Source: Geosiphon pyriformis uo1
Taxonomy: Eukaryota > Fungi > Glomeromycota
Assembly (NCBI GenBank): GCA_016748015.1
Contig: JAAOMT010000617.1
Span: 380,635 to 444,634, forward strand
Length of the DNA stretch: 64,000 nt
Reading direction: 5' to 3'
The notes under the pieces were generated by a model that saw nothing but the letters and a program-made list of their open reading frames with translations, ran no database searches and was not told where the DNA came from. Below, piece by piece: positions 11,185-59,500 of this stretch. Each line of letters opens with the position of its first letter. The stretch's first letter is position 1. Both the position numbers and the translations under genes were made by a program.

Positions 11185-11811
11185 AAATAGGATTTTATCA
11201 AGAGAAACGTTTTCTATCCAGGCCTGGAGTCACTAACATCTACTGAAATTGGTAGCTAATCAATTTCAAAATGTTAGTTGGGTTTTGGGGATTTTCCAAG
11301 TACAATAATTAAAGAATTTGGTTTTTTAAATTATTTAATATTTATTTCTTTTTGTGTGTATAGGAATGGTTTTAAGAGATAAATCTAAAGTAAGATACAT
11401 TTTTTCGAAGAGAGAAGCTCTTCTTTTATACAACTTGTCGTAACACTATTTTATGAACTTGAACTTTGCTATTTTTTACAATTTCGCTGAACTAAAGATA
11501 CATTTTGGCGAACTACAAGTTATTTCTGCGAACTATTAGATATTTCAGTGAACTATCAATTATTTCGGCGAATTTCTATAAATTTTGGCGAACTTTTGAA
11601 TGTTACATAGTTTGGAGTATTGCATGATTGATCATTGCAATTAGGTTACATTTGTGTTGTGTACAATTTGGGTTATTAATTAAATAATAATTTTGGACAT
11701 TCTTTGCTAATGTAATAAGTGATAATTTGAAACAATAATATATGCTAATTAATGATAGGAATTATAAGATAGTTTCATGCTAAATAATATCTCTAATTTC
11801 GTCTGGTAACA
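11185..11811 (-). repeat. Family A 5' LTR of A1 (partial because of the gap)
   Basis: Aligns with 6042-6669; ends TCTGGTAACA followed by TSD ACAC. Confidence 0.92.
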
Positions 11812-22509: not shown

Positions 22510-22574
22510 TATCGTGTTTGTTTGTGGAAAAGTTACAAATAATTAAGTTGGTTTGGTTTGAGAGGGTTTTACTA

Positions 22575-29884: not shown

Positions 29885-29930
29885 TGTTTGTTGTTTTGTT
29901 GTTAATTCAAATGGGTGTTGGTTTTGTATT

Positions 29931-31192
29931 CTAATCTTGCCTTATTCTTGAGAGACAATCAACATTGGTATGGAGTTTTCTTAGTTTGTGGTGTACAATA
30001 TATTGGTAGTTGGCTAAAAATCCTGTCCATTGGATTTGTTTTGCATTCAGCTAAGTGTTTTTGTTCTAAAGTCATTTGAGTCCAATATTATCAGTGATAA
30101 TATCAAATTCTTTGGGTCTGAGGTAAAGGTTGAAGTGATGTAGGACCCAGATTACTGCTGCAGTTTCTAATTCTGTTGCAGGGTAGTTTTTTTTGGCTGG
30201 TTTCAATATTCTGCTAGCATAAGCAATTACTTGCTCATTTCTATTGTTATCTAACTGTGATAGAATAGCACTAAAGGCAATATAAGAGGCATCTGTTGCT
30301 AACTGGAATTGGTTGCTGAAATCTGGGTAGGCGAGAATTGGAGCTGTCATTAGTTTTTCTTTAAGGATTTCAAATGTGTTTTGGTGTTCAGCAGTTCATT
30401 TGTATTTGACGTTTTTGGTGGTAAGCTGGTTGAGAAGTTTTGTGATTTCTAAAAATTTTTTGATAAATTTTTGATAGTAGAAGGCTAACCCTATGAATCC
30501 TCTTAGTTCTGTAGTGTTTTGAAGAGTTTTGAAGTTTTTGACAGTACTGATTTTTCTAGGGTCTGGTTTGATTCCATCTTTACTAATGATATGACCAAAG
30601 AAGGCCAAGCTTGTTTTTCCAAAGTAGCATTTTTCAATGTTGAGTTTCAGTCCTGCTTTTCGTAATCGTTGAAAAACTTCTTGTAGGTGTTTTAAGTGTA
30701 ATTCGAATGATGGAAAATAAACATCAGTATCGTCAAGATAAATGACTACTGACTTCCAAAAAAGGTCTTTGTAAACAACATCTATGAGTCTTTGGAATGT
30801 TGCTGGTGCATTGCATAATCCGAAAGGCATTATGTTGAACTTGTAATTTCCTCCTTGAGTGGTGAATGCTGTTTTGGAGTGATCTTTGGGATCTATGGCA
30901 ACTTGCCAGTATCCACTTTCTAAATCTAATGTCAAAAAGTATTTGGACTTCCCAAGAGCATCTAGCATGTCATCAATTTGGAGAAAAGGGTAGGCATCTC
31001 CAATGATAACACTGTTGAGTTGTTGATAATCAATACAAAATCATATCTTTCTATTTTTCTTTTTAACTAAGACCACAGGTAAATTCCATGGACTTATTGA
31101 TGGTTGAATAAGCCTATTGTTGAGCATCTGTTGTACTTCTTCGCAGATAAATTGGTGACTTTCTGGAGCAACTCAGTAGGCTTGCTGTCACT
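29931..31192 (-). pseudogene. RT-RNaseH of A2
   Basis: 'LDLESGYWQ', '[13 protein letters not shown]', 'YLDD', 'ATDAS'; ends LSRIRQD*. Confidence 0.9.
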
Positions 31193-34100
31193 TTGATTAC
31201 TTTGAAGAATTTAAATCACAATTGCCAACACCATCAGAATTCCGATCACCACCACCTCAACCAGATTTTGGAAACACAAGTCCTTGGGAAATAACAGAAT
31301 CAGAAGAAAAGGAAGAAGAAGAATCTGAAAATTAAAAATTTACTTACCAGAACCCAATCACGGAAAACTCGGAATTTGGAATTCCAAATCTTCAAACCCA
31401 GCAAAATTCAAATTTAGAAAACCTGGAAATTGAAACTCCAAATATTCAACCACCACAAAATCAGAAGCCCAATCTAATTAATCAACCAGATCTATCTCCC
31501 ATTATCGTCATTAACCCACCACCAGTTAAACCGATTGGCCAGCCATTACAACAACCACACCAGCAGATTCAACAGCCATTAGTACTACTTCAATAATCAC
31601 CACAACATAACTTAGACCCAATGGCATATGCACTAATAGCCAAACTTGAAAAATTCACCAGTGAAAAAGACAATGCCCAAGTATGGCTAAATGATGTGAA
31701 GAAAGTCATTGCAGCTAATGGATGGAATGACACCAGAGCCATGCAAGCCATTCCATATTTTCTCCAGAATACTGCCAATTCATGGTATCAAAGCCTGGTC
31801 AACAAACTCCAAGATTTCAATGCATTCAAAATAGAGTTCTTAAGATACTTTAGCAACAATAACAGCATTAACAGACTACAAACACCTTCACTACTATCAA
31901 ACAAGGAGAAAATGAAGCAGTCATTACTTACTTAGAACACTTCCACAAAAATCTGCATTAGATCTAAGCCATTGACCCCAATTATTTCACAGTAGCCCAG
32001 ATTCTAAATCAGTTTATTCACAGATTATGCAGTAGTATCCTACAACACATACATCCAATATATTCCATCAATCTGCAAGCAGCCATCACAAATGCCAGAG
32101 ATTTTGAAGCTGCTGAATTCGAAGCTAACCATGCCCAAGCCATTAATCTAGTAATGAATAGATCATCTAAATTGGATTCCAAATTGAAACAATTTAGTGA
32201 TTTCATCAATCAAAAATTAGAGGGATATTTAGCTGACAATCATGCAATTTATCAACCATCACAATGACACAATAATTCTGGAAATGCAAATCATTTCCAA
32301 AATCAGTTACGTCTATTATTGTCGACCAATCAACAGTGGCAACAGAAAATGCGTGTTTGCTACTATTGTGGTAAACAAAGACACCTACAAATTAATTGCC
32401 ACTATTGCTTAAATAACCAATGATTGGGAAACCAATATTAAAACCCTGATTGCCGGTTTCAAATTCTGAATAACCCACCAAATTCAGAACCATATCATAA
32501 GAATTACTTACCTATGACGCAGCAGCCACCTTATCAACTACCAGTATATCAAATGCCAATTTATCAACCAACAACACCAGTAATTTATCAGCCACAGCCA
32601 CAGCCTTTGGTAATATATCAGCCCTAACAAATTCAAACACCACTACAGAACTTATCTTAAAACAGAACCCAAAGGCCGAGATTGACCCAACAAAGCTGGA
32701 GATTGTTGATGATAGTCTACCAACTGATCCACAGTTCTTCTACATAATCAGCAGGATCTCAACAATAGAATTCAGACACTGGGTACACTCAACACCCAAA
32801 TTTCCAGAACTATTTAAGTCTACTGGTTACCCTAGAAGACACTCAACCCAATAACCTGGAAACCAACCAACATCCAACACTTACCAGCAATATTCTGCCA
32901 GCTACCATCACCAAGAACAAATCACTAGATGCCATTTTCCTGTTTGAACTCAAAAAACCATTGACCACGCCGTTATTTAGTGGAGCCACTTTAGAAAAAA
33001 AAACCCATTACTGCCATGTACACTAATGCCAAAGTTGATGGCCACTTCATTAAACTGATTCTAGACAGTGAATCAGCTGACAGCATTATTACAAAACAAT
33101 TCATAGACCAATTAGGTCACTGAGTTGATTGTATTGCCAGTGCCAGAATCATAACTACTGATGGAGCAACCAAAACTCCCATTGGTAAGATTGATAACTT
33201 TCCTTTTGAAGTCAATGACATCATTATTCCCATTAAAGTTCTAGTAATAGAAACAACCCAATATCAGGCATTAGTAGGGAATGACTGGTTATCTAAAACC
33301 AATGCCATATTGGACTGGATGACGCAGAAGCTCTAACTAAGCCAAAATGGTCAACACATACATGTACCAGCCACATGTGGCCATTTCAAGACTACCAACT
33401 CGACAGTTCTACTTATTAAATTTGAGGAAGACAAAGAGAAACCTACCTAGGAAGCATACCAAGTCTCTTGGGCCAACAAAAACCACAATAAGCTACCACT
33501 GATACTTTCTTGGGATGACAAAGGAAAAAGAAAAGAGAACAAAGAACTTACCTGGAATACCAGCCAAGTCTGGGAAACAAATAACGATTAAGACAAATTT
33601 GCAACCTGGGAGTGGGAAGAAACTGACAAAGAAAAGAGAAAGAAAAAAAAAGAAAAAACTACTCTTACCAGTAGCACTTACAGTTCATACGCTTATATTT
33701 CATCACAACCATCCAATTATTGTCAACCAAAATTAGAGTGTGTTAATTGTGGCAAGAAACTGTCATCAATGGGTGCTTGTTGTGGTGACAATAAAAAATA
33801 TGTCATGGCAACAAAATTTTATTGCCGCCTATGTGTCATAGAATGCTTTGGACAACCAAAATGACAAGAAAAGTGGGACAATCAACTATGTCTCGTATGT
33901 AGAACTATTTTGCCTGATGAAGGAATGTGGAATGACATTCTTGGACAAGGAGGGATGTGCGATGAGACATGCCAGTATATCATCTTAATAAACAACTGGG
34001 TACACAAAAAAACTTCTATTGATGATGTCTGAAAAAGAGCGTTGTGATGATTAAAAGAATATTCCCATGACAAACATGAACTCTGGAGAATGGTGTATGC

Positions 34101-34991
34101 GAAAACAGAAGGTACAACAACCAGTGAACTACTGAAAATAAAAAACAACCCTCTATCTCTTCCTAAACTTGAATACGTCCAAACTTTTAATGTCTTTAAC
34201 AACATTGAGGATGACCCAGAGGAATTTTACGAACATTACCAGCAATTAGCACCCACCAGAGAAGAGCAGAAACAATGCTTGGAAGAAATAAACACCTGAT
34301 TATGTGATCACTGTTTGATCTCATGTGATTTTTAGTATTGTAATGAGTGTGATTTTATTTACAATCCACCACCATACATAATCTACATGATTCCAGAAGA
34401 AGATGAACCAATAAGCAACTGCACATTGGAATTGGAATCAACTTTCAATTCCAATTCAAACTCTGACAATGATGACAAGGAAAACACCAGTTTTAGTTCC
34501 ACTCAATATGACAATGAAAATATCAACAATTCAGACTTTGATTCAAATCCCAAAATATATATTGCACTTCCTAATCTATCTAAGGAGCAGAAACTCAAAT
34601 GATATAGTAACAATAATGAAAGTATCATGCCAGAACGCACACATAATACTGATATAGGGTTTGATCTGAGATATCTAAAAAAAAAAGCCATCAAATTGAA
34701 ACCAAATTTGCACACATGTATTGATCTCAAAATAGCTCTAGAAATTTTAGCAACAACCATGGTTTAATTAACATCTAGGAATAGCCTAGCAAAAAAAAGA
34801 ATCAACATTAGAGGAGGAATAATTGATGCAGGGTATGTAAGAAATATCATTGCTATGCTACAAAATAATTCAGAAAAAGCCTATACTATAAAGCCAAATG
34901 AAAAAATAGCACAAGCAATATTCCTGCCTCTGGTGAAAGTAGCTAAATTAGTATTAGTGAGAAACAGGGATATAGAGATTTGGATCCATGG
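31193..34991 (+). mobile_element. Ty3/Gypsy element B2 fragment (gag-PR-Cys-rich-dUTPase), no 5' LTR, interrupted by B3
   Basis: Colinear with B3 36363-40180; gag 31621-31935; dUTPase remnants ~34620-34991. Confidence 0.85.
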
Positions 34992-35759
34992 TGTTACTTA
35001 TAAAAAGAAAACAGATATAGAAAATAGCAGACCAATAAGAAAATAGTATTTAGCACATAAGCACATTGCTCAGAAATGTGAGCATTGCTCAAGAAATCAT
35101 AGCACATCACTCAAAAATGTGAGCAATCTCATAAAAAATCAATTATATATATATAGTAGTAGTATTAAAAATAGAAAAAGCAGAATTCTTTAGTTAGAAA
35201 TCTTCCATCCACAAATATTAAATAAATAAATCATCTACTATCCAAATTTACTTTCCATTATCAACACTTTATGTTAATAGTAATTAATACTTAACTATGT
35301 TGGAACAATAGCTCTTGATCATGGCTATTGACAAAATACTAACTTGCACATCACATTGGCTTCTTTTTTTATTTTCTTTTATTTTTTTTTTGTTTTTTGA
35401 TTTTTTTTATTGAATACTAACTGATTAAGGATTAAAGCACTGAGTAATTAACATCACAAATAGCCTGGTAAAAAACCCAGAAATAAAGGTAAAATTATAT
35501 ATATATTATTGGATAGCTTACCAAAAAGGCACAAATGCCAGAATAAATTTGGCCACCAAGCTGAGAAAGAAATTGGAAAAACAACTTGAGAATACAACTA
35601 TCATCAACCTTAAAGGATTTCTGTCTATTATACAAAAGACTCAACTCTAAAACCTTCAGATACAACTAATATACTAATATCACCAGCATTATCAAGATAT
35701 TGAGCACCAAGTTACAGATTTGTTATTTGATTTGAGACCCCAAATAATTATCTGTAACA
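34992..35759 (+). repeat. Family B 5' LTR of B3
   Basis: TGTTAC..TGTAACA followed by TT-TGGTGCTC PBS. Confidence 0.9.
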
Positions 35760-35821
35760 TTTGGTGCTCTCTGTAAGGTATATTCCTACAGAGAACCAGC
35801 ACTATCAACAATCATCCAAAA

Positions 35822-38800
35822 ATGGCAGAATCAGAAATCATAGAAACAAACCATTTAGGATTTGCCAAATCTTTATTTCAATAGTACAGTCAACAATTAG
35901 GATTGAACAATAATCATTTTTCAGCAGAATCAGCCTTTAACTTCTACATCAATGATAAAATCACAGATTGCTTAGGAGGAACAGTTAACATTGAATCAGC
36001 AAGGGAAAACTTCTATACAGAATTATTTCAACATACCAGCTTACCAAGAAACTACAGTTTTACACCAATTATTAGGGAAATCAATCAAACTATTGAAAGG
36101 TATACACAACAACAATTCTCCATTACCTATGCAGATAAAGGCAAAGGAAGATTACAAACCTCAGCAGTAACACCAAAACAAATACAACCACCCAATTGGA
36201 AGAAAACCCAAGTTGAATTACCCACCAATCCATCATATTATTATATGTCTAGAAGTACTATTAACATCTCATCAACAGACACATCTATATCAAATGCGAC
36301 ATCAATCTTTGAATGTTTCCCATTTCAAAGTAAACAACAAAAAGCTATTAGGACCTTATGGTGATTACTTTGAAGGATTTAAATTGCGATTGCCAATGCC
36401 ATCAGGATTTCAATCACTGCCACTGCAGCCAGATTTTAAAACTGCAAGTCCTTGGAAATTAACAAAATCAGAAAAGAAACAGGAAAAAGAAAAAGAATCT
36501 GAAGATCAAAAATTTACTTACCAGAACCTGATTCCAGAAAACCTGGAAATTGAAACTCCAAATTTTCAAACACAGCACAATCAGAACAATTGAAACCCCA
36601 ATATTAATAATCAACAACACTTACCTTCAGTAATTATAATCAATCCACCTCCAGCTTCACCAATCAACAAACGGCAACAACAGACACTTCAACCACCACA
36701 ATTACCACAGCAGCCACTTCCACAGCCACAACAACAACTTCAACAATCAAACTTGTATTCAATGGCCTACACTCCAATAGCAAAACTCGAGAAATTCACT
36801 GGCAAAGAGGACAACACCCAAGTATGGCTTAACAACGTAGAAAAAACCATCATGGCTAATAGATAGAATGATGTCAGAGCCATGCAAGCCATCTCATATT
36901 TTCTCCAGGATACCACCAATTCATGGTACCAAAGCCTGGTCAACAAACCCCAAGATTTCAATACATTTAAAATAGAGTTCTTAAGATACTTCAGCAACAA
37001 TAACAGCATTAATAGGCTAGCAAACACCTTTACTATCATCAAACAAGGAGAAAATGAAGCAGTCACTACCTACTTAGAATGTTTCCACAGGAATCTGCAC
37101 CAAATTCAAGCCATTGATCCCAATTATTTCACAGTAGCCCAGATTCTAAATCAGTTTATTCGTGGATTATGCAGTAGCATTCTGCAATATGTACGTCCAA
37201 TACATTCCATTGATCTGCAAGCAGCTGTCACAAATGCCAGAGATTTTGAAGCTGCTGAACTCAAAGCTAACTATGCTCAAGCCATTAATCTAGTAATGAA
37301 TGGATTATCTAAATTGGATTCCAAATTAAAACAATTTAGTAATTCTATCAATCAGAAATTAGAGGGATACTTAGCTGACAATCACGCAATTTATCAACTA
37401 CCACAACAATACAATAATTCCAGAAATGCAAATTGTTTTCAGAATCAGTCACATTTATTATTATCGACCAATCAACAGTGGCAACAGGAAACACGTGTTT
37501 GCCACTATTGTGGTAAACAAGGACACCTACAAATCAATTGCCGTCATCACTTAAATAACCAATGATCGGAAAATCAATATCAAAATTCTGATTGCCAGTT
37601 TCAAATTCCAAATAACTTACCAAACTCAGAACCATATTATCAGAATTACTTACCTATGATGCAGTAGACACTTTATCAACCACCAGTATATTAAATGCTG
37701 AGTTATCAACTGACAACACCAGTAATTTATCAGCCACAGCCACAACTTATTTATTAGCCACAGTCTCAGGTAATATATCAGCCCCAACAAATTTAAACAC
37801 TGTCACAAAACTTATCTTAAAATAGAACCCAAAGGCCAAAATTGACCCAACAAAGCTGGAGATCATCAATAGTAGTCTACCAACTGATTCTCAGTTCTTT
37901 CATACAACCAGAAGGATTTTGACAACAGAATTTGGGCACCAGATACGCCCAAAACCCAAATTCCCAGAACTATTTAAGTCTCCTGATTATCCCAGAAGAC
38001 GCCACTTTGAACAAACTGGAACCAAATCAACCAGCAAAATCTACCCACAACATCCCACCAGCAACCATCACTGAAGACAAATTCCTAGCCACCATCTTTA
38101 TCTTTGAACTCGAGAAAACCACCACAGTACTACTGTTTAGTAGGGCTGCTTTAGAAGAAAAACCCATCATGGCTATGTATACTGATGTCAAAGTTGATGG
38201 TCAGTCTATCAAACTGATTTTAGACAGTAGATCAGTTGGCAGCATTATCACAAGACAACTTATGGACCAATTAAGTCGTTGAGTTGATCAAGCTATCAGC
38301 ACACGCATTATCACAGCTGATAGAGTGACCAAAACTCCAATTGGTAAAATTGATAACTTCTCAATTGAGATCAATGGCATCACAATACCCATCAAAGTCT
38401 TTGTGATGGATGTCACTCAGTATCAAGCACTAGTTGGTAATGACTGGCTCACCAAAACCAATGCCATCCTTAATTGGACCACTCAGGAGTTGCAACTCAG
38501 CCAGAACAGCCAACACATGAGAGTACCAGCAACATGTGGCTATTTCAAACCCAGCAGTATTATGTCAGTCTTACTAATCGAGTTTGAGGAAAAGGAAAGA
38601 AAACCAACATAGGAGACATATCAAGTCTTGTGGGCCAATGAAGATCACAACGGCCACCAATACTATCATGGGATGACAACAGAAAGAGAAAACAAAAAGA
38701 AGAACTTATCTGAGAGACTGACAATCTGACCTGGACTGACAATGACAAAAATGAACTAACACCAAACTGGGAATGGAAAGAAGAAAACAATAAAGAAAAG

Positions 38801-41800
38801 AGAAAAGAGAAAGAAGAAAAAACAACAACCACCAATACCACTTCTTCTAACTCCTACACTTACACTATACTATTGCAATCTACCTATCATTAACCAAAAC
38901 TTATATGTGTTGATTGCGGCAAAAAATTGTCATCAATAGGTGCATGCTATAGTAATGACAAGAAATATACAACAGTGACCAAATTCTACTGCTGTGCATG
39001 TATTATAGAAAGGTTTGAATGACCAAAGAGGCAAAAAAAATGGGACAACCAACCTTGTCTCACTTGTGGAGAAACTTTTTTGGATGAAGAAATGTGGAAC
39101 AACATTTCAGGGTGAGAAAAAATGTGTGACAAATCATGCCAATACACGATTCTAATCAGTGACTGGGTAAGAAAAGGGACACCAATAAAAGCAGCTTGGA
39201 AAAGAGCAGTACAACAATTGGACAGTTGTCCACATGACAACAACAAGATCTGGAGAATGGCAAATGCCAAAATAGAAGGGGTGACACCCAAAAAAATCAG
39301 AGAAATCAAAAACAACTTACCAGAACCTATAAAACTTGACTGGAACAAAGAACCAGCCATAAATCTCCTGGAACTAGAAAAATTTCATGAACACTATCAA
39401 ACTTTAGCACCCACCAGAGAAAAACAAGAGCAATGTTTAGCACAGCTAAACACTCAATTATATAACCACTGTTTGATTCCATGTGACTTTTAATACTATA
39501 ATGAGTGTGATCTTATTTACAATCCACTACCATGCATGATCTACATGATCCTAGAGGAAGAAAAACCAATCAACAGCTATGCATCAGAATTGGAATCAAC
39601 TTTTAATCCCGATTCAAACTCCAACAATGATGATGACAAAAACAATGGTTCCAGCTCTGCTCCAAATAGCAAGAAAAATTATGATGAGTCAAACTCTGAT
39701 TCAAATCCTGAAACATTTATTGCACTTCTTGATCTCTCAAAGGAACAGGAACTCAAATAGTATAGTGATAATAATGAAAGTATCATGCCAGAATGTGCAT
39801 ATAATACCAACACAGAGTTTGATCTGAGATATCCAGGAAAAGAAGCCATCAAATTGGAACTAAATTCACACACATGTATTGATCTCAAAATAGCTCTGGA
39901 AATTCTAACAACAACTATGATCCAATTAGCATCTAGGAATAGTTTAGTGAAAAAAAGAATCAACATCAAAGAAGAAATAATTGATGCAGGATATGTAGGA
40001 AATATTATTGCCATACTACAAAATGACTCAGAAAAGATCTATATTATAGAACTAAATAAAAAGATAGCACAGACAATATTATTACCTCTGATGAAGATAG
40101 CTCAGTTAGTTTCAATGAAAAAGAGGGAAGAATTAGATATAACAGCAAGAGAGATACAGGGATTTGGATCAACAGGTAGAATAAATATACCAGTTAATAT
40201 GGCAGAAGAAGAAATTGTTGATAAAAGAAAAATTATCTCAACCCATCAAACAATTTCCATTCTGCCATATAACCAGTATATATTAGCCATAAAAAGGAAA
40301 GTAAAGGATCAAGCTCAATTGTTTGAAGCAGAAGCCACTATTTGTGAATCAGGCGAGATTGAACTCACCAATCTCTACATATCAGCCAAAAGCCTTAAAA
40401 ACATCAAAATCCTCATTTATAATGCAATTAGAAAGGTCATTGAAATACCAAAAAGAATCATCATTAGATATTTAACCACCAAAGTTGAGGATCAACCACC
40501 AAACCACATTCCAAATTTTCTATAGCTTTGCAGATATGTGAACATTACATCACAAACCATCTATGGAAGAAGTAAATGTTATCTGCTTCAACCAAAACAA
40601 TTGGAACAGATAAACATAGGAAATCTAGATCCACTTTAACAGATGCAACTATAGATTTTACTCAAAAATTTCAATGACATCTTTGCCAGTAAAAATGAAT
40701 TTGCCTGCCCCAATATTATCCAGCATCAAATCAAGACTGGAGATGCAATGTCAATTAAACAACAAGCATACAGAGTACCACTAGCTAGCCATGAGATCAT
40801 TTATCAAGAAATCAACCGGATGCTTGACAATGAGCTAATTCAGCCATCAATAAGTCTATGGTCATTACCAGTAGTACTAGTTCATAAAAAAAATGAAAAA
40901 ATCCGTTTTTGTGTAGACTACTGAAAACTGAATAGAGTAACTAAAGGTAATAGCTATCCAACTCCAAAAATCCAAGAACTATTCGATACTTTTGGAGGAA
41001 ATAAATAGTTCTTAACACTAGATTTAGATAGTGGTTATTGGCAAATAGTCATGGATCCAGCCGACAAAGAAAAAACAGCATTTACCACAAGAAAAGAAAA
41101 TTTTGAGTTTGAAGTCATGCCATTTGGCTTAATAAATGCTCCAGTAACATTCCAATGGCTCATAGAAATTGTTTATACTGGATTACTATGGAAATCAGTA
41201 GTCATATACTTGGATGACACCAATGTGTTCTCAAAAACATTTGATAATCATCTGCATCATTTCCAACAAGTGTTTGAAAGGTTGAGAAGAGCAGGATTGA
41301 AACTAAATACAACCAAATGTTTCTTTGGAAAAACTGAACTCAAGTTTTTGGGATATATAGTGAGCAAAAATGAAATCAAAATGAATCCAGACAAGATTGA
41401 AGTAGTTAAAAACTTTTTGGTACCAACCAACTTGACAGAACTAAGAGCATTTTTAGGTTTTGTAGACTATTATTGCCATTTTATCAAAGACTTTTCAAAA
41501 CTGGCTCAGCCACTTTACCATCTACAGACCAAGAATGTGAAGTATAAATGGACCAAGGCTCAACAAAAAGCATTTGACACATTAAGAAGAAAGCTTATCC
41601 AAGCTCTAGTATTGATGTATCCAGATCACAGCAAACCATTCATAATCACCACTGATGCATCAGGTCAAGCATTGGGAGCAGTACTATCACAGAAAAGATC
41701 AAATGAAAGAGAACATCCAGTAGCTTATGCCAGTAGAAGCTTAAGTCCAGCTGAGAAAAACTATGGAACTCCAGCACTAGAACACTTAGCTATCTATTGG

Positions 41801-42010
41801 GCTGTCATCAAATAGAAGGAATACTTGAGTCAAAAGTTTGAAGTGTACACTGATCACAAAGAATTGACTTCAATTCAGAAACAAAAATTTGCAAATGATT
41901 GTCATGCCAAATGGAAAATAGAACTTTTACCATTTAATTATACAGTACATTATAAAAAGGAAAAAAACAATGGAAATGCTGACAGACTGTTATGAATGAA
42001 ACAAATCTAA
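35822..42010 (+). pseudogene. gag-PR-Cys-rich-dUTPase-RT-RNaseH polyprotein of B3
   Basis: CCHC 'CHYCGKQGHLQINC'; PR 'LILDSRSV'; dUTPase 'IIDAGYVGNI..GFGSTG' (39785-40525); RT 'YLDD' and RH 'TDASG' (41051-41815); TAA 42008-42010. Confidence 0.9.
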
Positions 42011-42040
42011 AAACATTTCAACCCAAAAATATAACAAAAG

Positions 42041-43414
42041 ATGAACATACAAAAATACCAACAACTTCATCATTATATAAATACTCAATCATTCAAGGAG
42101 AAATTATTTCAAAAGGAACAAAACAACATAAAACAACAATCAAAATATTTTATCAATCATCAAAATATACTCTACTGAAAAAACAAAAGAAATCTAGATT
42201 AACCAATCAGAGTAATCACAGAACCAGAGAAAGAGACAATATTATTCAACATGCATTTAGATCCAACAGCAGGACATTTTCATAAAAAAGCAACCATAAA
42301 AAGAACCAGAAAAAAATACTATTGGCTATCAATGTATCTAGACATTATCTAATATGTTCAGAATTGTGATGCTTATCAAAGAAGAGGAGGAACAAGACCA
42401 AGTAAACCATTAAGACCAATCAAAGTGGGACAACTATTCAATCACATTGAAATTGACTTAGTTAGACCATTAACAATCACCAGTAAAAGCAACAGATATA
42501 TTGCAGTAGCCATGGATTATCTCAAAATGGCCAGAAGCAAAAGCCATTCAAAAAGCAGATGCAGAATCCATTGCCGAATTTGTTCATCAAGATTTGATAT
42601 ATCAACATGGATGTCCAAAAAAACTACTATTAGATTAAGAAACTTATTTTGTGAATAGAACATTAACAGAATTAAGTCAGAGATTTGGGATAAAAAAACT
42701 ATTATTGTCATCATATTATCCATAAACAAATAGACTAGTCAAAAGATTTAATAGAACACTGTGTAAAGCAATTGCCAAAATCAGTCAAGAAAACCAAGAT
42801 GAATAAGATTTGTTTATACTATTAGTATTATTTGCTTATCGAACAATGAGACAAAATACTACACAAGCAACACCATTTGAATTGGTATATGATAGGACAG
42901 CAACATTACCAGTTGAGAAAAAGGTCAACACATATCCAACTGAACCAATAACAGAAGCTAATTTTCAAGAAACATTGTTAAAAAAAACATATGACCTAAT
43001 GGAAACACTAAAAAACAGACAATGAAAAGCAGCTGATAACATTCAAAAGTCTCAAGAAAAGCAAAAAAAACGACATGATAACCAATTATCAGATAAACCA
43101 ATTGAATTCAAGATTGAAGACAAAGTACTTTTACATTGTACCAAAGCAGAAAAACAATAAAGTAAAAAATTTGATCCCAAATGGGATGGACCATTTCACA
43201 TAAAAGAAATTCTTGGAAAAAGAGCTTATAAACTAAAATAGGACAATAAAACCTTAACCAAAGCAGCACATAGTGATCAACTGAAACCATATCACCAAAT
43301 AGCATCATCATTTACCAATAATATTCCACAATTAGGAGTACAATGAATACTAGTTCAACCAGATGAGATTCCATGAGATCTGGAATCAATCATAATTATT
43401 GGACCAAACATGTA
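42041..43414 (+). pseudogene. Stand-alone integrase ORF of B3
   Basis: ATG 42041 'MNIQKYQQLHHYI'; 'IDLVRPL', 'VLFAYRT', 'KWDGPF'; many stops and frameshifts. Confidence 0.82.
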
Positions 43415-46462: not shown

Positions 46463-47445
46463 TGTTACCAGACGAAATTAGAGATATTATTTAGCATGAA
46501 ATTATCTTATAAATTTTATCATTAATTAGCATATATTATCATTTCAAATTATCACTTATTACATTAGTAAAATGTTCGAAATTATTATTTAAATTAATAA
46601 CCCAATTTGTACACAACACAAATGTAACCTAATTGTGATGATCAATCATGCAATACCCCAAACTATGTAACATTCAAAAGTTTGCCGAAATTTGTAGAAA
46701 TTTACCAAAATAATTGATAGTTCACCGAAATATCTAATAGTTCACAGAAATAACTTGTAGTTTGCCAAAATGTATCTTTAGTTCAGTGAAATTGTAAAAA
46801 ATATCAAAGTTCAAGTTTATAGAATAGTGTTATGACAAGTTGTATAAAAGAAGAGCATCTCCTTTCAAGAAAATGTATCTTACTTTAGATTTATCACCTA
46901 GAACCATTCCTACATACACAAAAAGAAATAAATATCAAATAATTTGAAAAACCAAATTCTTTAAATTATTACACTTGGAAAATCCCCAAAACCCAACTAA
47001 CATTTTGAAATTGATTAGCTACCAATTTCAATAAACTGTTAGTAACTTCAGGCCTAAATAGAAAACGTTTCCCTTGACAAAATTCTATTTCTTTTACATT
47101 TCTTTTATTTTTCTTTTCTTTTTTTTATTACAATCATTAGGGTAGCCTACAGACGAGATTTCTGTAGAAGAGTTGACTTTCACAGCAAAGTAACTACATA
47201 TTTTTTTGTGAGCTTCCAGACAAGCAATTCCTGGGAAAGAGTTGATGTTTATTACAACATAACTACATAAAATAACTGGCATGGAATTGGCCATTCTACT
47301 CATAAGCCCAACAAGTTCAAATTATAGAAGATAATTTGAAGATAAATTCAGTTACTGGAGGTCCAACTACTTCCTGGAAACGTAAATTCACAACAAACAG
47401 ACATTAACAACATTCAAAAAAAGAGACCAAAAACCTCTGGTAACA
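46463..47445 (+). repeat. 5' LTR of D
   Basis: Direct repeat of 55370-56332; TATAAAAG at 46843. Confidence 0.95.
46681..46800 (+). promoter_or_regulatory. Phased array of TTCGCCGAAA-like motifs (20-21 bp period) in family A U3
   Basis: Six units with variable spacers, ending ~40 bp upstream of the TATA box; present in every family A LTR. Confidence 0.7.
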
Positions 47446-50400: not shown

Positions 50401-53106
50401 TGCGGCATACAACAGTGCTCTCAACAAACTTTATCACTACTCCCATAATGTTGAGATGATTTTCAACCTAGCAATGGCATTAATTAATAGAGCTACCAAA
50501 GAAGATATTTGTCAAATGAAGGAAGCAAAATACATTGAATACACCATAGAATTAGCTAGATTTGATTACAAAGATGAAGTAGAAGTCTACCACCAAATTG
50601 CAAGTCACATCTACCCAACCCAAGAAGCTCAAATTCAATGATTAGAGCAAATGAACATTAGACTATGTGAAGAATGCATTATGCCTTGTAATGAACAGTG
50701 GTGTCCTGAATGCTATGCTTTTAGTATCCTCTTGCCCAGCGAAAATGATGAGAACAAAATTGAATTTGGAGAACCTGAAACAACAAAAAAAATTGAAACA
50801 ACACCTATTTACCTTATCAAAAATTAGCCTGCCTTACAACTTAAATACTTCAACAACAACAGACAAGGAATAAAACCCGAAAAAGCACATGAAATTGATG
50901 CTGGATATGACCTAAGATATCCAGGCAAGGATACTCTTATTCTCAAACCCAAATCTCTCACAAAAATCAACCTCAAAATTGCACTTGAAATCCCGTCAGG
51001 AGCAATAGTTCAAATCACCTCCTGGTCCTCTCTGGCAAGCAAAGGAATCAATATTAGAGGAGGAATAATTGATGCTGGATATACTAGAGACATTACAGTA
51101 ATGCTTCAAAATGAAACTGACAAACTATTCAGGATCGAACATGCTGAAAAATTTGCCCAAGCTATTTACCTATCCCTAATCAACATTTCGGGTTTACAAC
51201 TAGTCAATCAAAGAGAACAATTAGGAAAAAGCAATAGAGGAACCCAAGGTTTTGGTTCAACTGGACGATTCACAGTTCCAGTTAATATAGCTCTTAATAC
51301 ACAGAACGAATCCCACCAGATTCTCAGACTTTCACAACCAATTACTATCTCACCCTTTAGAGAACATCCGGAAATCTACACCTGTCCAAAGCCAACAACC
51401 ACACAACAAATTTTTGAGTCCAATAAACAAGTCTGCTTGGAACATATATTTCGATCCCAAACATTTATATTCCAGAAGAAACAAAGAAAGTCTGAGTTAC
51501 TTTTTACAACCCCAATAATTACCCCATAATTTTATTAAATAATTTAGAAATTGGAGTTATTCATAGTAATATATTTCAACAAAAATTACCCCAAACAGTC
51601 CCTGATTTCTCTGAAATTATTGGACATTCACTACCAAAAATCAACCCAAACTCCAGCTCTGAAAACTACCATGTTGTCATGGAAAAACTATCTCAAATCA
51701 ACATAGGACAACTTGAACTACAACAACAGACCCAGTTCAAAGAACTAATTGCAAAATTTGCCAATATCTTCGCTGAAAACAACAATGACTTAGGAAGAAC
51801 CAATTTGGTTCAACACCAAATTTATACAGGAGATGCCAAACCAAGAAGACAACAAGCATATCAAGTTGCTCTAGAAAGCCACCAATTCATCTGAGAAAAA
51901 GTACAATGAATGCTTAACAATAAGCTCATCCAACTCTCCATGAGTCCTTGGACTTCATCTGTAGTGCTAGTTAAAAAGAAAAATAGAAAGATCTGATTTT
52001 GTGTTGACTATCGACAACTCAACAGTATTACAATTGAAGATGTCTACTCCCTTCCCCGGATTGATGACATGTTAGATGCTCTTGAAAAATCCAAATATTT
52101 TTCAACACTAGATTTAGAAAGCAGTTACTGGCAAGTTGCTATAAATCCCAAAAATCGCCCCAAAACAGCATTTACCACCCAAGGCAGAAATTACAAGTTC
52201 AATGTAATGTCTTTTGGATTATGCAATGCACCAGCAATGTTTCAGAGATTAATAGATGTTGTGTACCAAAGACTTCTTTGGAAGTCAGTAGTCATCTATC
52301 TTGATAATACTAATGTTTATTCTCCATTGTTCGAATTACACTTAAAACACCTGTGAGAAGTTTTTCAATGATTACAAAAAGCAGGACTAAAACTCAACAT
52401 CAAAAAATGCTACTTTGGAAAAACAAGTCTGGCCTTCTTTGGTCTTATTGTTAATAAAGATGAAATCAAACTGGATCCTGAAAAAATCAGCATTGTCAAA
52501 AACTTCAAAACTTCCCGAAACACTACAGAACTAAGAGGATTCATAGGATTAGCATCCTACTATCGGAAGTTTATCAAAAGATTCTCGGAAATTGCAAAAC
52601 CCCTCAACCAGCTTACCACCAAAAACGTTGAATACAAATGGACTACCAAACACCAAAAACTTTTTAGAATTCTCAAGGAAAAACTGACAACAGCTCCAAT
52701 CCTTGCCTATCCAGATTTTAGCAAATGATTTTGACTAGCTACAGATGTTTCATATACTGCCTTTGGTGCCATCTTATCACAACTAGATGACAACGGAAAT
52801 GAGCAAGTAATTGCTTATGCTAGCAGAACATTAAAACCAGTTGAGAAAAACTACCCTGCCACAGAACTAGAAACAGCAGCTGTAATTTGGGCCCTGCACT
52901 ACTTCAACCTTTATCTCAGGCCTAAAGAATTTGATATTATCACTGATAATATTGGACTCAAATGGCTTCAGAACAAAAATACTCAGCTGAATGCAAAACA
53001 AATCTGATGGACAGTATTTTTAGCAAACTATTGATACATAGTACATCACAAATCAGGAAAACTCCACACCAATGTTGACTGTCTCTCCAGAATGAGACAA
53101 GATTAG
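47491..53106 (+). pseudogene. gag-PR-Cys-rich-dUTPase-RT-RNaseH polyprotein of D
   Basis: Single frame apart from small indels at ~50030 and ~51445 that are absent in A1; CHYCGISGH knuckle, PR 49312-50037, dUTPase ~50880-51265, RT 52069-52356, RH; TAG 53104-53106. Confidence 0.9.
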
Positions 53107-53157
53107 AAAACACAAAAACCAACACTCAAATTAACCAACCAAAAGAGCCAACAAACA

Positions 53158-54540
53158 ATGAATTCAGAAAACTACAACAATCTCAAACAATATTTGGAAA
53201 CATTAAAAATCCCAACAGATTGGTCTCCAGATAAAAAACATCGACTACAACAACAAGCCAAACAATATTTTCTACACAACAACATTATTTATCATCGAAA
53301 TTTCAAAAACTCAAACAAACCACTCAGATTAATACAAGAACAGAAGAAAGAGACCATATTATACAACATGTACTCAGATCCTTCATCAGCATACTTTGGA
53401 AAAGATAGCACCACCCAAAGAACACTAAAATACTACTTTTGGCCTTAAATGAGAAAAGATATTCACGAATATGTCAAATCTTGTGATAGTTGTCAAAGAA
53501 GAGAAGGAACACGCCCTACTGAACCATTAAATCCAATCAAAGTTGGACAACCCTTTGACCAAGTTGGTATTGATTTAGTCGGACCACTATTTATCACCAC
53601 TTAAGAAAATCATTATATTGCAGTAGCTGTAGACTATCTTACTAAATAGCCTGAAACCAGAACCATTCAATGAGCAGATGTGAAATCAGTAGCAAATTTC
53701 ATCTACGAAGACATCATTTGTAGACATGGATGTCCAATTGAACTTTTATCCGATCAGGAGACATATTTTGTGAACAACCTAATACAAGAAATTTGCGAAC
53801 AATTCAATGTCAAAAGACCTCTGTCTTCGCTCTACTATCCACAAACAAACAGACTTGTGGAATGTTTTAACAGAACATTGTGTGAGTCATTAGCCAAAGT
53901 CTTAACCAATTTTGAGCAAGATTGGGATATCTTTATTCCATCAGTGTTACTAGCATACAGAACACTAAAACAAGATACTACAAAACACACACCATTTGAT
54001 TTAACTTATGGAAGAACAGCAATATTACCAATTAGTTTCACAATAGAAACATACCCAGCACAACCAATCAATGAAAACAATTTCCAGGAAACACTTCAAT
54101 GAAGAGCCTACACACTTCTCAGCACATTGAAAGAAAAATGAAAAATAGCCACCCATATTGAACACTTCCAAACTCAACAAAAAGAATGGCATGACAACAA
54201 ATTGCCCTCAGTTACCAATAATTTTAAAGTTGGAAACAAAGTTCTCTTACACAAAACTAAAGCTAAAAAACAATGGAGTGGAAAATTCAAAAATAAATGG
54301 GATGGACCATTCTTTATCCATAAAATACTAGGCAATGGATCATACAAGTTAAGACTTGATGACAAAATCTTAGCAAAAGTTGCACATGGAGATCGTTTAA
54401 AACACTATCATTCCAGAAACAATCCTGAACCATTAATTCCACAAATTAGTACACATTCCCTTTTAGTCAATCCCGAAAATATTCCTCGAAACTTAGAACC
54501 AATAGTTATTATTGAACAACCTTCCAACTTGAACACTTAA
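53158..54540 (+). pseudogene. Stand-alone integrase ORF of D
   Basis: MNSENYNNLKQYL; CDSC; 'GIDLVGP', 'LLSDQ', 'TNRLVE'; 'KWDGPF'; stop 54538-54540. Confidence 0.88.
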
Positions 54541-54684
54541 ATTAATTTTATTAGTTATTCCTTATAATTTAAAAATAATTTTACAAAAACAAAACAAAAC
54601 AAAACATACTGAAAGACAAAAATAACATAAAAACCCACATACCAAAAATAATTTCAATCTATTTTTCTCACTCAAATTTTTATA

Positions 54685-55401
54685 ATGACTATCCCTCAAA
54701 ATATTCAACAAATATCTCAAAAATTAATGCTAATTTTAAAGACAATATCCGAATTATCTATCACTATTACAGGAAAACATATTAATTATACCCAAACAGA
54801 AATAGTCGCCAGTTTAGCCCCAAATTCACGAAATTATCACCCCTACAAAAAGAACACAAGTTACTCTGGAATTCATCTGCCAGAACTTTTGAAGTTTGCT
54901 TTAAGAGAAAATTTAATGTTCATTCCTATTAGTATTCCACCAAATATTACTATTCAACAAAAACTTCAACTGTGTCTTAATGAAGAAAACCACAACTATA
55001 CTCCAATATATAGATATTTTTACATTGGAAAAACACTTCACGAACAAAAATGGGAGCTTACAGCAGCAAATCTCACAAAAGAAGCTATTCAAAAACAACT
55101 TCACAACGAATTCAAAACAACAGCTGGACCTACAAACAGTCGCTATAAACTAAGAGCTGCTCTTAGACTTTATGACTTATTCCACACCTGTGAAAATGCC
55201 CTACAAAACCCAATTTTACGACTTTTGAAGATTCAATACATTGGAAAGCTCACAGAACTGAAATTTCAACAATTTTCAGATCAAATTTCTTCAATAATTT
55301 TAGATTACTATCTGGAAATTACAGACAGTACTTGGACTTTGATAGAGTTCAGTCTTGAGGAGGAGGTTATGTTACCAGACAAAATTAGAGATATTATTTA
55401 G
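54685..55401 (+). CDS. Family A ORF3 of D, uninterrupted 238 aa, unknown function
   Basis: ATG-started ORF in the env position, running 32 nt into the 3' LTR; homologs in A2, E and B3; no signal peptide or TM segment evident. Confidence 0.75.
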   Translation: MTIPQNIQQISQKLMLILKTISELSITITGKHINYTQTEIVASLAPNSRNYHPYKKNTSYSGIHLPELLKFALRENLMFIPISIPPNITIQQKLQLCLNEENHNYTPIYRYFYIGKTLHEQKWELTAANLTKEAIQKQLHNEFKTTAGPTNSRYKLRAALRLYDLFHTCENALQNPILRLLKIQYIGKLTELKFQQFSDQISSIILDYYLEITDSTWTLIEFSLEEEVMLPDKIRDII

Positions 55402-56332
55402 CATGAAATTATCTTAAAAATCCTATCATTAATTAGCATATATTATTATTTCAAATTATCACTTATTACATTAGCAAAATGTCTAAAATTATCATTTAAA
55501 TTAATAATCCAATTTGTACACAACACAAATGTAATCTAATTGTGATGATCAATCATGCAATACTCCGAACTATGTAACATTCAAAAGTTCGCTGAAATTT
55601 GTAGAAATTTGCCGAAATAATTGATAGTTCACTGAAATATCTAATAGTTCGCAGAAATAACTTGTAGTTCACCGAAATGTATCTTTAGTTCAGCGAAATT
55701 GTAGAAAATAGCAAAGTTCAAGTTCATAGAATAGTGTTATGACAAGTTGTATAAAAAAAGAGCATTTCTCTTTGAGAAAATGTATCTTACTTTAGATTTA
55801 TCACCTAGAACCATTCCTACACACACAAAAAAAAATAAATATCAAATAATTCGAAAAACCAAATTCTTTAAATTATTATACTTGGAAAATCCCCAAAACC
55901 CAACTAATGTTTTGAAATTAATTAGCTACCAATTTCAATAAACTGTTAGTGACTTCAGGCCTGGATAGAAAATGTTTCTCTTGACAAAATTCTATTTCTT
56001 TTACATTTCTTTTATTACAATTATTAGAGTAGCCTACAGACAAGATTTCTGTAGAAAAGTTGACTTTCACAGCAAAGTAACTACACATTTTTTTGTGAGC
56101 TTCCAGATGAGCAATTCCTGGGAAAGAGTTGACATTTACTACAACATAACTACATAAAATAACTGGCACGGAATTGGCCATTTCACTCATAAGCCCAGCA
56201 AGTTCAAATTATAGGAGATAATTTGAAAATAAATTCAGTTACTGGAGGTCTAACTACTTCCTGAAAACGTGAATTCACAACAAACAGACATTAACAACAT
56301 TCAAGAAAAGAGACCAAAAACCTCTGGTAACA
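55370..56332 (+). repeat. 3' LTR of D
   Basis: Direct repeat of 46463-47445; followed by TSD GTGG. Confidence 0.95.
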
Positions 56333-56554
56333 GTGGTTAGTTTGGGTTTTTACAATTTTTGTAATAGATTTTGTTGTGGTGTATAAAATATTGTTTGGAT
56401 TGGTGTTGTAATCAATGTTTTTCACTTGGAGACCAATTTTTTGGCATGGTGAGAGTCTTCAAATAGTTTTTGATGTTGTTGTAGTTTTCTGGATCCATTG
56501 TTGTTGATTTTGTTGTTTGTTTTGCTATTAAGTTTGTTGGTGTTAATGTTGGTA

Positions 56555-59500
56555 TTAATATTGTCTCATTCTTGAGAGGCTGTCAATATTAGTGTGTATT
56601 TTTCCTGGTTTGTGATGTACAATATATTTGTAGTCTGCTAAGAAGTCATTTCATTGAGACTGTTTGACACTTTGTTCAGTTTTTTTTTATTAAGCCATTT
56701 GAGACCAATATTGTCAGTTATGATGTCAAATTTTTTTTCATTCTTCAGATATTGTTGAAAATGTTTAAGAGCCCAGATGACTGCGGCAGCTTCTAATTCA
56801 GTTGAGCCATATTTTAGTTCTGTTGGTTTGAGTGTTTTACTAGCATAGATGATGACTTGTTCTTGCTCATTTTCATTCAATTATGATAAGATGGCACCAA
56901 ATACTATGTGTGAAGTATTAGTGGCTAATTGGAACTGTTTGTTAAAGTCTGGATAAGCAAGAACTGGGGCTGTTGTCAATTTTGTTTTGAGAATTTCAAA
57001 AGCTTTTTGTTGTTTTTCAGTCCATTTGTATGGCATGTTTTTGTTGATAAGATAATTGAGTAGTTTGGCAATTTTTGAGAATCTTTTTATGAATTTTTGA
57101 TAGTAAGAGGCTAATTCTACAAATCCTTGTAGTTCTGTGGTATTTCTGGAAGTTTGAAAGTTTTTGACAGCACTGATTGTTCCTGGGTTTGGTTTGACTT
57201 CATCTTTACTAACTATGTGTCCAAAAAAGATCAAGCTTGTTTTTCCAAAGTGATATTTTTCAATGTTTAACTTTAATCCTGTTTTCTATAATCGTTGAAA
57301 AACTTCTCACAAGTGAATAAGGTGGGTTTCAAAGCTTGGTGAGTATACATTAGTGTCATCAAGATAGACAACTACTGATTGCCACAAGAGCTCTTTATAT
57401 ACAACATTTATGAGTCACTGAAATGTTGCTGATGCATTGCAGAGTCCAAAAGGCATAACATTAAACTCATAGTTTCCTCCTTGAATGGTAAATGCTGTTT
57501 TGGGTTGGTCTTTTGGGTCCATTTCGACTTGTTAGTATCCACTTTCCAAGTCCAAAGTTGAAAAGAACTTGGCTTTTCCTAAAGCATCTAACATGTCATC
57601 AATTCTTAGAAAAGGGTAGGCATCTCCAATTGTCACACTGTTCAATTGGCAATAGTCAACACAAAATCTGATTTTTCCATTTTTCTTTTTGACAAGGACT
57701 ACTGGTGAGGCCCAAGAACTTCTTGATGATTGAATCAATCCGTTATTGAGCATTATCTGAACTTCTTCTCTGATGAATTGGTGGCTGGCAGGTGGCACTC
57801 TGTAAGCTTGCTAATGTTTTGGTAAAGCATCTCCTGTATGGATCTGATGTTGAACCATATCCGTTTTTTCCAGGTCATTGTTGTCTTTTGCAAATATATT
57901 TGCAAATTCAGCTATCAATTGTTTCAATTGTCTTTGTTGTTAAGGTTCTAAGGCACCCATGTTGATTTGAGAGAATTTTTCTTTCAAAAAGTGGTAGTTT
58001 TCAGTAGTGAGAATAATATTTGGATTTGGGAGTAGAATGTGCCTTACAATTTCGATAAAATTAGAGACAATTTAAGAGTTTTCATCTTGAAAAATATTGT
58101 TGTGTATGATTCCAATCTCTAATTTGTTTAATAAGACAATAGAGTAATTATTGAGGTTGTAAAATGTAACTTGAAATTTTTTTATTCCTTTGGAAATATA
58201 AACATTTGGAATTGAGATTTCATGCTTCAAACAGATTTGTTCATTGGATTCAAAGATTTATTGGGTAGTAGTGGGTTTTGAGCAAGTGTAAATTTCGTGA
58301 TGTTCTCCAAAAGGTAAAATAGTAATTGGTTGGGGAAGTTGAAGAATCTGGTGAGATTCATTTTGTATTTTAAGGGCTATGTTTATTGGAACTGTAAATC
58401 ATCCAGTTGAACCAAAACCTTGAGTTCCTTTTTTACTTTTTTCCAATTGTTCTCTGTTGTTAACTGATTGTAGACCCAAAATATTGATTAAGGGTAGGTA
58501 AATTGCTTGAGTAATTTTTTCAGCATGTTCAATCTTGAATGGTTTGTCTGTTTCATTCTGCAACATGATGGTAATGTCTCCAGTGTATCCTGTATCTATA
58601 ACTCCTTCTTTAATATTGATTTCTTTGCTTGCCAATGATGATTTGGAGGCAATTTGAACCATTGCTCCAGGTGGAATTTCAAGAGCAATTTTGAGATTGA
58701 TTTTTGTTAAAAACTTTGGTTGGATAACCAAAGTATCTTTTCCTGGGTATCTTAGATCATATCCGGCATCAATTTCGTGTGCTTTTTCTGGTCTGATTCC
58801 TTGGCCATAGTTGTCAAAATATTTAAGTTGTAGAGATAGTTGCTTTTCAAGGAGATAGATGGGGGTGGTTGGTAGTTCTTCTATTAGTTCGGATACTCCA
58901 AATTCGATTTCATTTTCATCATTCTTATTTGGCAGAAGAATGCTAAGAGCATAGCATTCTAAACACCATTGGTTATCACAAGACATGATGCATTCTTCAC
59001 ACAATTGAATGTTTATTTGCTCTAATTGTTAAATTTGAGCTTCTTTGGTCGGATATGTGTGGCTTGCAATTTGGTGATATGTTTCTGTTTCATCTTCATA
59101 ATCAAATCCAGCTAATTCCATAGTATACTCAATATATTCAGCTTCTTTTATTTGATGGATATCTTCTTGAGTGGTTCTATTGATCAATGCTATTGCTAAG
59201 TCAAAAATTATTTCAGCATCATGAAGGTAGTGGTAAAGTTTATTGAGAGCACTGTTGTATGCTGCATCAAATGGTGTTCCTCTTCTGACTTTTTCCGAAA
59301 TTGATAGAGCATATTGACAGGTTTGATCACATACTCCTCCTCTCATTGCAACATCAATCCAGTTGCATTCTTCTGGTAACATATCTCCACATGTAAGGCA
59401 AGATGTGTTGTCCCATTTTCTACTTCTTTTTGGAGATCCAAATCGTTTTCTATGGCATGCTTTGCAAAAATAACAGGTACAAGTTTCATATTTCTCTTCT

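Follow-up and report, generated by a model that had tools for sequence, protein, structure and literature searches.

The integrase of retroviruses and long terminal repeat (LTR) retrotransposons enters the particle as the tail of the Gag-Pol polyprotein, from which it is released by the protease. In the Ogre/Tat Gypsy elements of plants and in Skipper of Dictyostelium, pol occupies more than one open reading frame (ORF), with the break between protease (PR) and reverse transcriptase (RT) or the protease set apart, and in Ogre this break is removed by splicing. Retroviruses and Drosophila gypsy use 5'-leader splicing for env, and the polycistronic RNA of cauliflower mosaic virus (CaMV) is translated by reinitiation. 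The present study concerns 64,000 nt of the 128-Mb, 792-contig genome of Geosiphon pyriformis uo1 (contig JAAOMT010000617.1, positions 380,635 to 444,634; hereafter the window), which has a G+C content of about 33% and is dense with decayed Gypsy elements. In one of these, element D, the ORF carrying RT and RNase H (RH) ends in a stop codon, and after a short spacer integrase follows as an ORF with its own start codon. Judged from comparison of sequences, this separate integrase cistron is very probably functional and ancestral; the layout is robust as an observation, and a mechanism is proposed for it.

Separate integrase cistrons in Geosiphon and its relatives

Pfam matches on the pieces of element D and on two related loci, L065 and L074, gave the order PR-RT-RH-integrase, and LTRs flank the coding region both in element D and in a relative from Rhizophagus irregularis. 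A Ty3-type Gag was recognized through Retrotrans_gag, Ty3_capsid and zf-CCHC in ORF1 of L074, and through precomputed matches to PEG10_N-capsid and zf-CCHC in L065. The integrase consists of an H2C2 zinc domain, a DDE core and an SH3-like C-terminus, and Ty3 Gag3-Pol3 was the best solved-structure match for both halves. The lineage is one of Ty3/Gypsy LTR retrotransposons, so far named from Glomeromycota only.

The break lies directly behind RNase H. The LSR motif that closes this domain aligns with ISR of Ty3, which ends at polyprotein residue 1008; in the crystallised Ty3 RT chain (4ol8, 478 residues) ISR ends at residue 475, three residues before the chain end, and the CaMV pol chain (8r0s) also ends three residues past its LSR. 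The tail beyond LSR comprises four codons in this genome, two to four in many members of the lineage, 7–22 in some and about 335 in one subclade. On the other side of the break, integrase residue 52 aligns with residue 45 of prototype foamy virus (PFV) integrase and residue 29 with Ty3 residue 1068, so the integrase ORF begins roughly where mature integrase starts, N-terminal extension included. In effect, the stop and start codons seem to stand in for the protease site between RT-RH and integrase.

Conservation across the Geosiphon genome was assessed from copies compared and tallied individually. Thirty genomic copies of the D junction, 94–96% identical to the window copy, all have TAG or TAA at the ORF1 stop codon; the integrase start is ATG in 25 and ATA in five, and the spacer is 51 nt long except in nine copies with 49 nt, so that the frame is not fixed even inside the D family. 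Furthermore, in an unbiased sample of the 30 best matches to the integrase core (rve, PF00665), LSR is followed by exactly four codons and a stop at 27 loci, and a 28th turned up on later inspection. These loci represent five sequence types, namely ...NVDSLSRMRQD, ...NVDCLSRMRQD, ...NVNSLSRMRQY, ...NADALSRLTIQ and ...NADCLSRMRHT. The stop-spacer-start pattern is far beyond chance.

The families that share this pattern are deeply diverged, the integrase of D being 77% identical to that of A2, 58% to the L062 type, 47% to B and 41% to C, the last value being as low as that between D and a Rhizophagus element (44%). For the B and C families, two and six copies were examined out of 936 and 1,958 first-look candidates. 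L062, also from this genome, has an uninterrupted 459-aa integrase ORF that begins 29 nt after ...LSRMRHT-TAA. With three exceptions (frames of 1534, 783 and 635 aa), the 150 rve matches that were scored have open frames of at most about 420–487 aa around the core. The longest of the three (L063:1310-5911, G000:C618), which was inspected, lacks an internal segment, in frame, that reaches from early RT into the core of integrase. In translation it has a visible CX2CX4HX4C knuckle, and a multi-Cys region and a dUTPase-like motif lie between protease and RT. All of TAG, TAA and TGA are used at the end of ORF1 and none of them occurs inside intact ORFs of 459–1742 aa, which excludes a reassigned stop codon. 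The stop and the integrase Met are, as far as these comparisons go, an ancestral trait of the lineage and not a product of decay.

At the five window junctions (D, A2, E, B3 and C), direct reading and translation confirmed the stops, starts and coordinates given in the original prediction, and its description of the spacers as A/C-rich and G-poor agrees with the measured 70–90% A+C and 2–4% G. It had placed the stop 3–4 codons after LSR; a stop soon after the motif is indeed present, but in this genome the distance is always exactly four codons. At B3 the motif itself has decayed to L-L-stop ahead of MKQI, and the second B copy (L061, minus strand) retains both the stop and the MNIQKY start. 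The triple stop of C, formerly used as an argument against decay, does not serve as one: only two of the six C copies have it, with TAG TAA behind the first stop, the other four having CAG followed by AAC or TAC there. The first stop alone, retained in all six (TGA in four, TAA in two), appears ancestral. The C spacer, which extends down to 22510, is accordingly 59 nt long as claimed only after the third stop, and 65 nt when counted from the first. The reading of the C start, ATA, as a decayed ATG is upheld by the ATG in four of the six copies. The two wider claims also stand: integrase is a separate and ancestral cistron in all families present, with the stop and Met common to them all, and the variable frame argues against readthrough or a fixed frameshift, since the spacers of this genome (29, 30, 46, 49, 51, 56, 57 and 65 nt) occupy all three frames.

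Outside Geosiphon, a search with the L062 integrase gave 1,825 homologues and a second search, from another subclade, 1,713; details were taken from the best 120 of each. Those of the first search are integrase-only proteins of 390–453 aa (42–52% identity, 84–96% query coverage), several of them named R. irregularis proteins, and about 105 share their start position and the opening M-[D/E/N]-x3-Y-x2-L-x2-Y-L. The best 120 of the second are likewise integrase-only (311–440 aa) and add R. clarus. In an alignment of 31 integrases Met1 is an invariant column. A search with the 991-aa L065 pol returned mainly chimeric gene models of 2,000–3,500 aa, unusable for counting pols that end after RNase H, and a search of the ESM Atlas with the integrase returned generic integrase clusters only.

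The R. irregularis-type contigs L065 and L066 have all of their ORFs intact (gag 70–1827, PR-RT-RH 1887–4862, integrase 4949–6208, ORF4 6271–6888). In L065 gag and pol overlap, with pol in the -1 frame. The codons AAG TAA stand right behind the pol stop, and the frame of integrase is open only from a point 75 nt past this stop, 12 nt ahead of the ATG, so that neither a frameshift nor readthrough can join pol and integrase. The DAOM 197198 assembly contains a matching copy, split as well, whose 716-bp LTRs are 99.44% identical. In that assembly (L148:5122-8759, 10001-11260) the integrase is annotated as a stand-alone 'putative integrase core domain protein' and gag-pol as a spliced gene of 879 aa. 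Another relative, L156, has an intact ORF1 of 1739 aa followed by an intact integrase of 410 aa. In the metagenomic locus L067, gag-PR and RT-RH overlap by 25 nt in the -1 frame (6415–6439), and RT-RH and integrase overlap at an ATGA (7968–8004).

A metagenome sample of 80 loci was fetched with integrase alignment. Among loci at least 37% identical to the query, nearly all informative ones have a stop no more than 47 codons upstream of the conserved Met, the exception being L125 (38%), with a fused frame; loci of 36% identity or less mostly have a fused frame of 200–890 aa. The split trait is strongly clustered on the integrase tree (0 of 500 shuffles as low), which requires three state changes. 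A conserved stop, a spacer in any frame and an invariant integrase Met do not fit an integrase that is carried within a Pol polyprotein and released by the protease.

Intercistronic regions and the translation of integrase

Over the lineage the distance from stop to ATG ranges from -11 to +110 nt and takes all three frames. The tightest junctions occur in relatives, with an ATGA overlap in L067, a TAATG overlap in L070, 2 nt in L106 and 5 nt in L101. The spacers are almost devoid of start codons: one ATG was counted in 1,014 nt from 18 lineages, against 8.3 expected from shuffling within each spacer (P=0.002) and 15–19 from the composition of the flanks. The 150 nt ahead of the pol stops have 2.7 ATG per 100 nt, so it is the stop codon that marks the beginning of the ATG-free zone. 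In 11 of 11 relatives the start codon of integrase is flanked by a purine at -3 and G at +4. The Geosiphon spacers have 42–60% A and fold to 0 kcal/mol; those of the R. irregularis type are T-rich, and spacer composition is not conserved across the lineage. They are free of the dinucleotide GT in Geosiphon and have very few AG there, none at all in those of A2 and the L062 type, which speaks against splice sites within them.

The arrangement is repeated behind integrase, where the first ATG past the integrase stop opens an ORF of 119–230 aa in nine of 14 related elements. This post-integrase ORF, 119–240 aa long, without a Pfam family and preceded by an ATG-free spacer of 32–184 nt, was noted at window positions 54541–55401, at L065:6209-6888 and in L091, L077, L080, L081, L084, L068, L074 and L061. 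It could encode a helper for expression or for particle entry.

In 11 related elements, one of them in the R. clarus assembly, a conserved motif lies 6–22 nt upstream of the integrase start codon. Its sequence is GTGAAAGC-NN-AAG, followed by a hairpin of TGTNNN, an 8-nt loop CANNGTGA and NNNACA, and then GC. Pairing is complete in a seven-sequence alignment (42 of 42 cells), the three variable pairs changing by compensation only; the covariation score was reached by none of 500 shuffles, and slid controls pair in 24–57% of cells. The hairpin stands downstream of the pol stop, not upstream of it. No Rfam family was found for it with the four related loci searched, and the motif was not found in the Geosiphon genome. 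As the hairpin is conserved with compensatory pairs, the alignment is taken to mean that some members of the lineage at least have RNA signals under selection between the cistrons. ORF1 of this subclade continues for about 335 aa beyond RNase H, with a Cys/His-rich stretch and no Pfam match (L074:3434-4438, ORF1 aa 1145-1479; also L077, L080, L096, L108 and L154-L156), and ends in a conserved ...GKRFKRY in L074 and L154-L156. Separately, the last ORF1 codons of element D (window 53076–53099) could form a hairpin of TGTCTC, an 8-nt loop and GAGACA, 5 nt before the stop. Its stem-loop geometry is the same as that of the other subclade's hairpin; variation between families is low here and coincidence is possible.

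It is proposed that the genomic RNA is polycistronic, encoding ORF1 (gag-PR-RT-RH, or else gag and a pol reached by a -1 frameshift), integrase and a further ORF of about 150–240 aa. Ribosomes that end on pol would scan on through a spacer without AUG and initiate again at the start codon of integrase, which would make integrase output a fixed fraction of pol, and the free integrase would join the reverse-transcription complex in trans. The original prediction had listed reinitiation, internal entry and a subgenomic RNA, and this list may be narrowed, indirectly, by two observations: the spacers are almost devoid of ATG, and both integrase and the next ORF start at the first AUG past the preceding stop. 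Reinitiation is preferred because this architecture matches what scanning-dependent restart predicts. Taken as a whole, an account by polycistronic RNA, a separate integrase cistron and termination-coupled restart has a chance just short of even; termination-coupled reinitiation as the actual mechanism of integrase translation is put forward tentatively, at a shade below that. A wider version is rather more doubtful, in which termination and reinitiation might run serially from pol to integrase to ORF3, much as in caulimoviruses, throughout this lineage of arbuscular mycorrhizal fungi, with dedicated signals (unstructured spacers free of AUG, or the conserved hairpin), perhaps an element-encoded helper, and integrase recruited in trans. 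If the proposal is true, these elements are a natural eukaryotic reinitiation system working after very long ORFs, in which the dose of integrase is uncoupled from Gag-Pol processing.

Several points weigh against this proposal. Eukaryotic ribosomes normally reinitiate very poorly once they have translated an ORF of over 1,000 codons, unless a dedicated cis element or trans factor assists them, and no UGGGA resembling a termination upstream ribosome-binding site (TURBS) was seen upstream of the D and L065 stops, inspected by eye only. The gap between stop and start in the window families, 29–67 nt, compares with 0–5 nt in classical stop-restart systems. A single clade of split layout was marginally rejected (approximately unbiased test, p=0.033; long branches are involved), so that a single origin is not supported. 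All window-family copies are decayed, and function is thus argued from relatives. Moreover, an AUG-free leader would be equally expected of a subgenomic mRNA that starts near the stop.

Such a subgenomic mRNA, transcribed from a promoter within the RNase H region or made by joining of the 5' leader to a splice acceptor close to the AUG, and perhaps serving the next ORF too, is an unlikely source of integrase, although the AUG-free leader with its good start context does resemble a short 5' untranslated region. The hairpin of the Rhizophagus-containing subclade, with its GUGAY and ACAG motifs, would also suit it, since it could mark where a transcript ends, serve as branch site and acceptor, or bind a protein. 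However, the AUG-free zone begins at the stop codon and not upstream of it, the ATGA and TAATG overlaps leave no room for a leader within a spacer, and the spacers of this genome offer no GT and hardly any AG. Eight R. irregularis contigs are collinear with the genome and contain no spliced form, though rare variants are lost from contigs and these may be DNA. Cap-independent internal entry, in which the A-rich unstructured spacer or the other subclade's hairpin recruits ribosomes directly, is a good deal less probable still. Pab1-dependent internal entry has been reported for A-rich leaders in yeast, and both the composition of the Geosiphon spacers and the covarying hairpin just ahead of the AUG would accord with it; yet spacer composition varies over the lineage, some elements have no spacer at all, and direct placement of ribosomes on the AUG would not need ATG depletion that starts exactly at the stop.

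The remaining explanations deny the separate cistron itself. Master copies that are dead or non-autonomous could owe the stop to a defect and take their integrase from ordinary fused elements, in which case the integrase-only proteins would be fragments produced by gene calling. Decay is certainly heavy, with 4–22 stops per 500 codons in the window-family copies and D LTRs of only 91–93% identity, but the same stop and Met recur in lineages about 41–47% identical in integrase, the split is found in elements with all ORFs intact and in the copy with nearly identical LTRs, Met1 is invariant across diverse intact ORFs of 410–450 aa, and the sole frame of fused-pol length among the scored rve matches is the deletion product described above. 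This explanation is accordingly very improbable. Hardly any weight is left for RH and integrase being fused after all, by readthrough, programmed frameshift, a stop-removing intron or a reassigned stop. Most copies of D and of the NVDSLSR type (57 nt) do have an open, in-frame spacer, and in L067 the frame of integrase, at -1 relative to pol, has 34 nt in common with it, as fusion would have it; against this stand the spacer lengths in all three frames, in-frame stops in the A2, B3, L065, L087 and L095 spacers, the late-opening integrase frame of L065, the three stop codons used at the site and a conserved Met that would be superfluous in a fused protein. An Ogre-type intron spanning the stop, a check on which had been suggested with the original prediction, was ruled out by the dearth of GT and AG, the collinear contigs and the invariant downstream Met. 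A GT...AG intron in the L065 spacer was also considered and dropped, as it begins after the stop and is not conserved in L068. On this reading, the junctions exclude readthrough, a fixed frameshift and an alternative genetic code as routes to integrase, a fused product being contradicted in most lineages.

Features of element D and the rest of the window

The coordinates of element D, of the other window junctions and of the hairpin motif are collected in Table 1. Element D is an old insertion, as its LTR divergence indicates. Its spacer is predicted to be unstructured (minimum free energy 0 kcal/mol), and its integrase cistron is decayed, with six in-frame stops within the first 420 codons.

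Table 1. Features of element D, the other window junctions and the hairpin motif of related elements (window positions unless a locus is named).
Feature	Position	Strand	Evidence or remark
5' LTR, element D	46463-47402 (approximate)	+	direct repeat pairs D3/D4, 91-93% identity to 55370-56289, about 8.9 kb apart
RVT_1 match, element D	51997-52353	+	Pfam
RNase H domain, element D (stop-free piece of ORF1)	52735-53004	+	Pfam RT_RNaseH, E=1e-26
ORF1 end, element D: LSR motif and four-codon tail MRQD	53083-53103	+	translation, ...NVDCLSR-MRQD
ORF1 (gag-PR-RT-RH) stop TAG, element D	53104-53106	+	TAG/TAA here in 30/30 genomic copies
Intercistronic spacer, element D, 51 nt	53107-53157	+	90% A+C, 4% G, no ATG
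Integrase cistron (ORF2), element D	53158-54540	+	frame map; ATG 53158, stop TAA 54538-54540
Integrase_H2C2 zinc domain, element D	53449-53601	+	Pfam; downstream of ORF1 stop
Second intercistronic spacer, element D, 144 nt	54541-54684	+	2% G, no ATG
ORF3, element D, 238 aa	54685-55401	+	no Pfam family; starts at first ATG past integrase stop
3' LTR, element D	55370-56289 (approximate)	+	repeat pairing with 46463-47402
A2 junction	29882-29933	-	LSR-IRQD, TAG 29933-29931, 46-nt spacer 29930-29885 (no AG, no ATG), ATG 29884-29882
E junction	56496-56557	-	LSR-MRQY, TAA 56557-56555, 56-nt spacer, ATG 56498-56496
B3 junction	42008-42043	+	MKQI, TAA 42008-42010, 30-nt spacer, ATG 42041-42043
C junction	22507-22577	-	LSR-LTIQ, ancestral stop TGA 22577-22575, secondary stops 22574-22569, decayed start ATA 22509-22507
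Hairpin motif, just upstream of integrase ATG	L074:4463-4503, L077:585-626, L080, L088, L089, L096, L108, L154-L157

At 31591–39670 and 6099–11540 there are direct repeats, 74–97% identical, with a constant interval of about 5.14 kb; they have the appearance of retrotransposon units that are tandem or recombined, and not of simple LTR pairs. Decay throughout the window and in L001-L060 is mostly C-to-T and G-to-A (CGA to TGA at Arg, CAG to TAG, ATG to ATA), and the decayed copies have accumulated their stops at only about 5% divergence. This spectrum suggests methylation-linked mutation of repeats, or a mutation process resembling repeat-induced point mutation.

Significance and comparison with known systems

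Hundreds to thousands of elements, among them recently active copies in the model mycorrhizal fungus R. irregularis, depart in a conserved manner from the rule that integrase travels as part of Gag-Pol. No description of an RH/integrase split in Gypsy elements was found in the literature, Repbase lying outside the search, and a paper on R. irregularis transposons contains no discussion of ORF structure. The layout raises the questions of how a eukaryotic ribosome gets to a cistron behind an ORF of 1,000–1,700 codons and how a free integrase locates the cDNA, and it offers natural material for studies of reinitiation or internal initiation in fungi. There are consequences for annotation as well: the integrase genes of these elements are now labelled as stand-alone "DDE-type integrase/transposase" host genes, and tools that assume a fused pol will misjudge intact elements as broken.

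In the stop-restart systems of caliciviruses, influenza B, victoriviruses (AUGA) and hypoviruses (UAAUG), the ribosomes that start the second cistron come directly from termination on the first, as they would in the elements described here. The ATGA and TAATG overlaps of L067 and L070 resemble those systems, and the restart AUG is the first at or after the stop and lies near it throughout the observed range of distances. The window families differ in their wider gaps, and no TURBS motif or pseudoknot was identified. CaMV and the other Caulimoviridae are related reverse-transcribing elements, with a pol chain that ends a few residues past LSR and a polycistronic RNA with close or overlapping ORFs. 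Caulimoviruses, however, lack integrase and LTRs and use a viral transactivator (TAV), whereas the elements studied here have LTRs and a complete integrase and do not belong among caulimovirus-like pararetroviruses.

Spumaretroviruses, and errantiviruses and retroviruses with respect to env, also make a replication protein apart from the Gag-Pol fusion that reaches the particle or complex by itself, but they do so from spliced subgenomic mRNAs, and the protein is Pol or Env and not integrase alone. The Ogre/Tat and Skipper elements are similar in having the pol region split into more than one ORF; the break in the present lineage lies elsewhere, between RNase H and integrase, and the downstream part has its own conserved Met. 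Ty3 (Metaviridae) shares the LTRs, the Ty3-type capsid with its zinc knuckle, the PR-RT-RH-integrase order and the integrase domains. Its integrase is the C-terminal part of Gag3-Pol3 and is freed by the protease, whereas in the lineage described here a stop codon stands at the same place and integrase begins with an invariant Met of its own.

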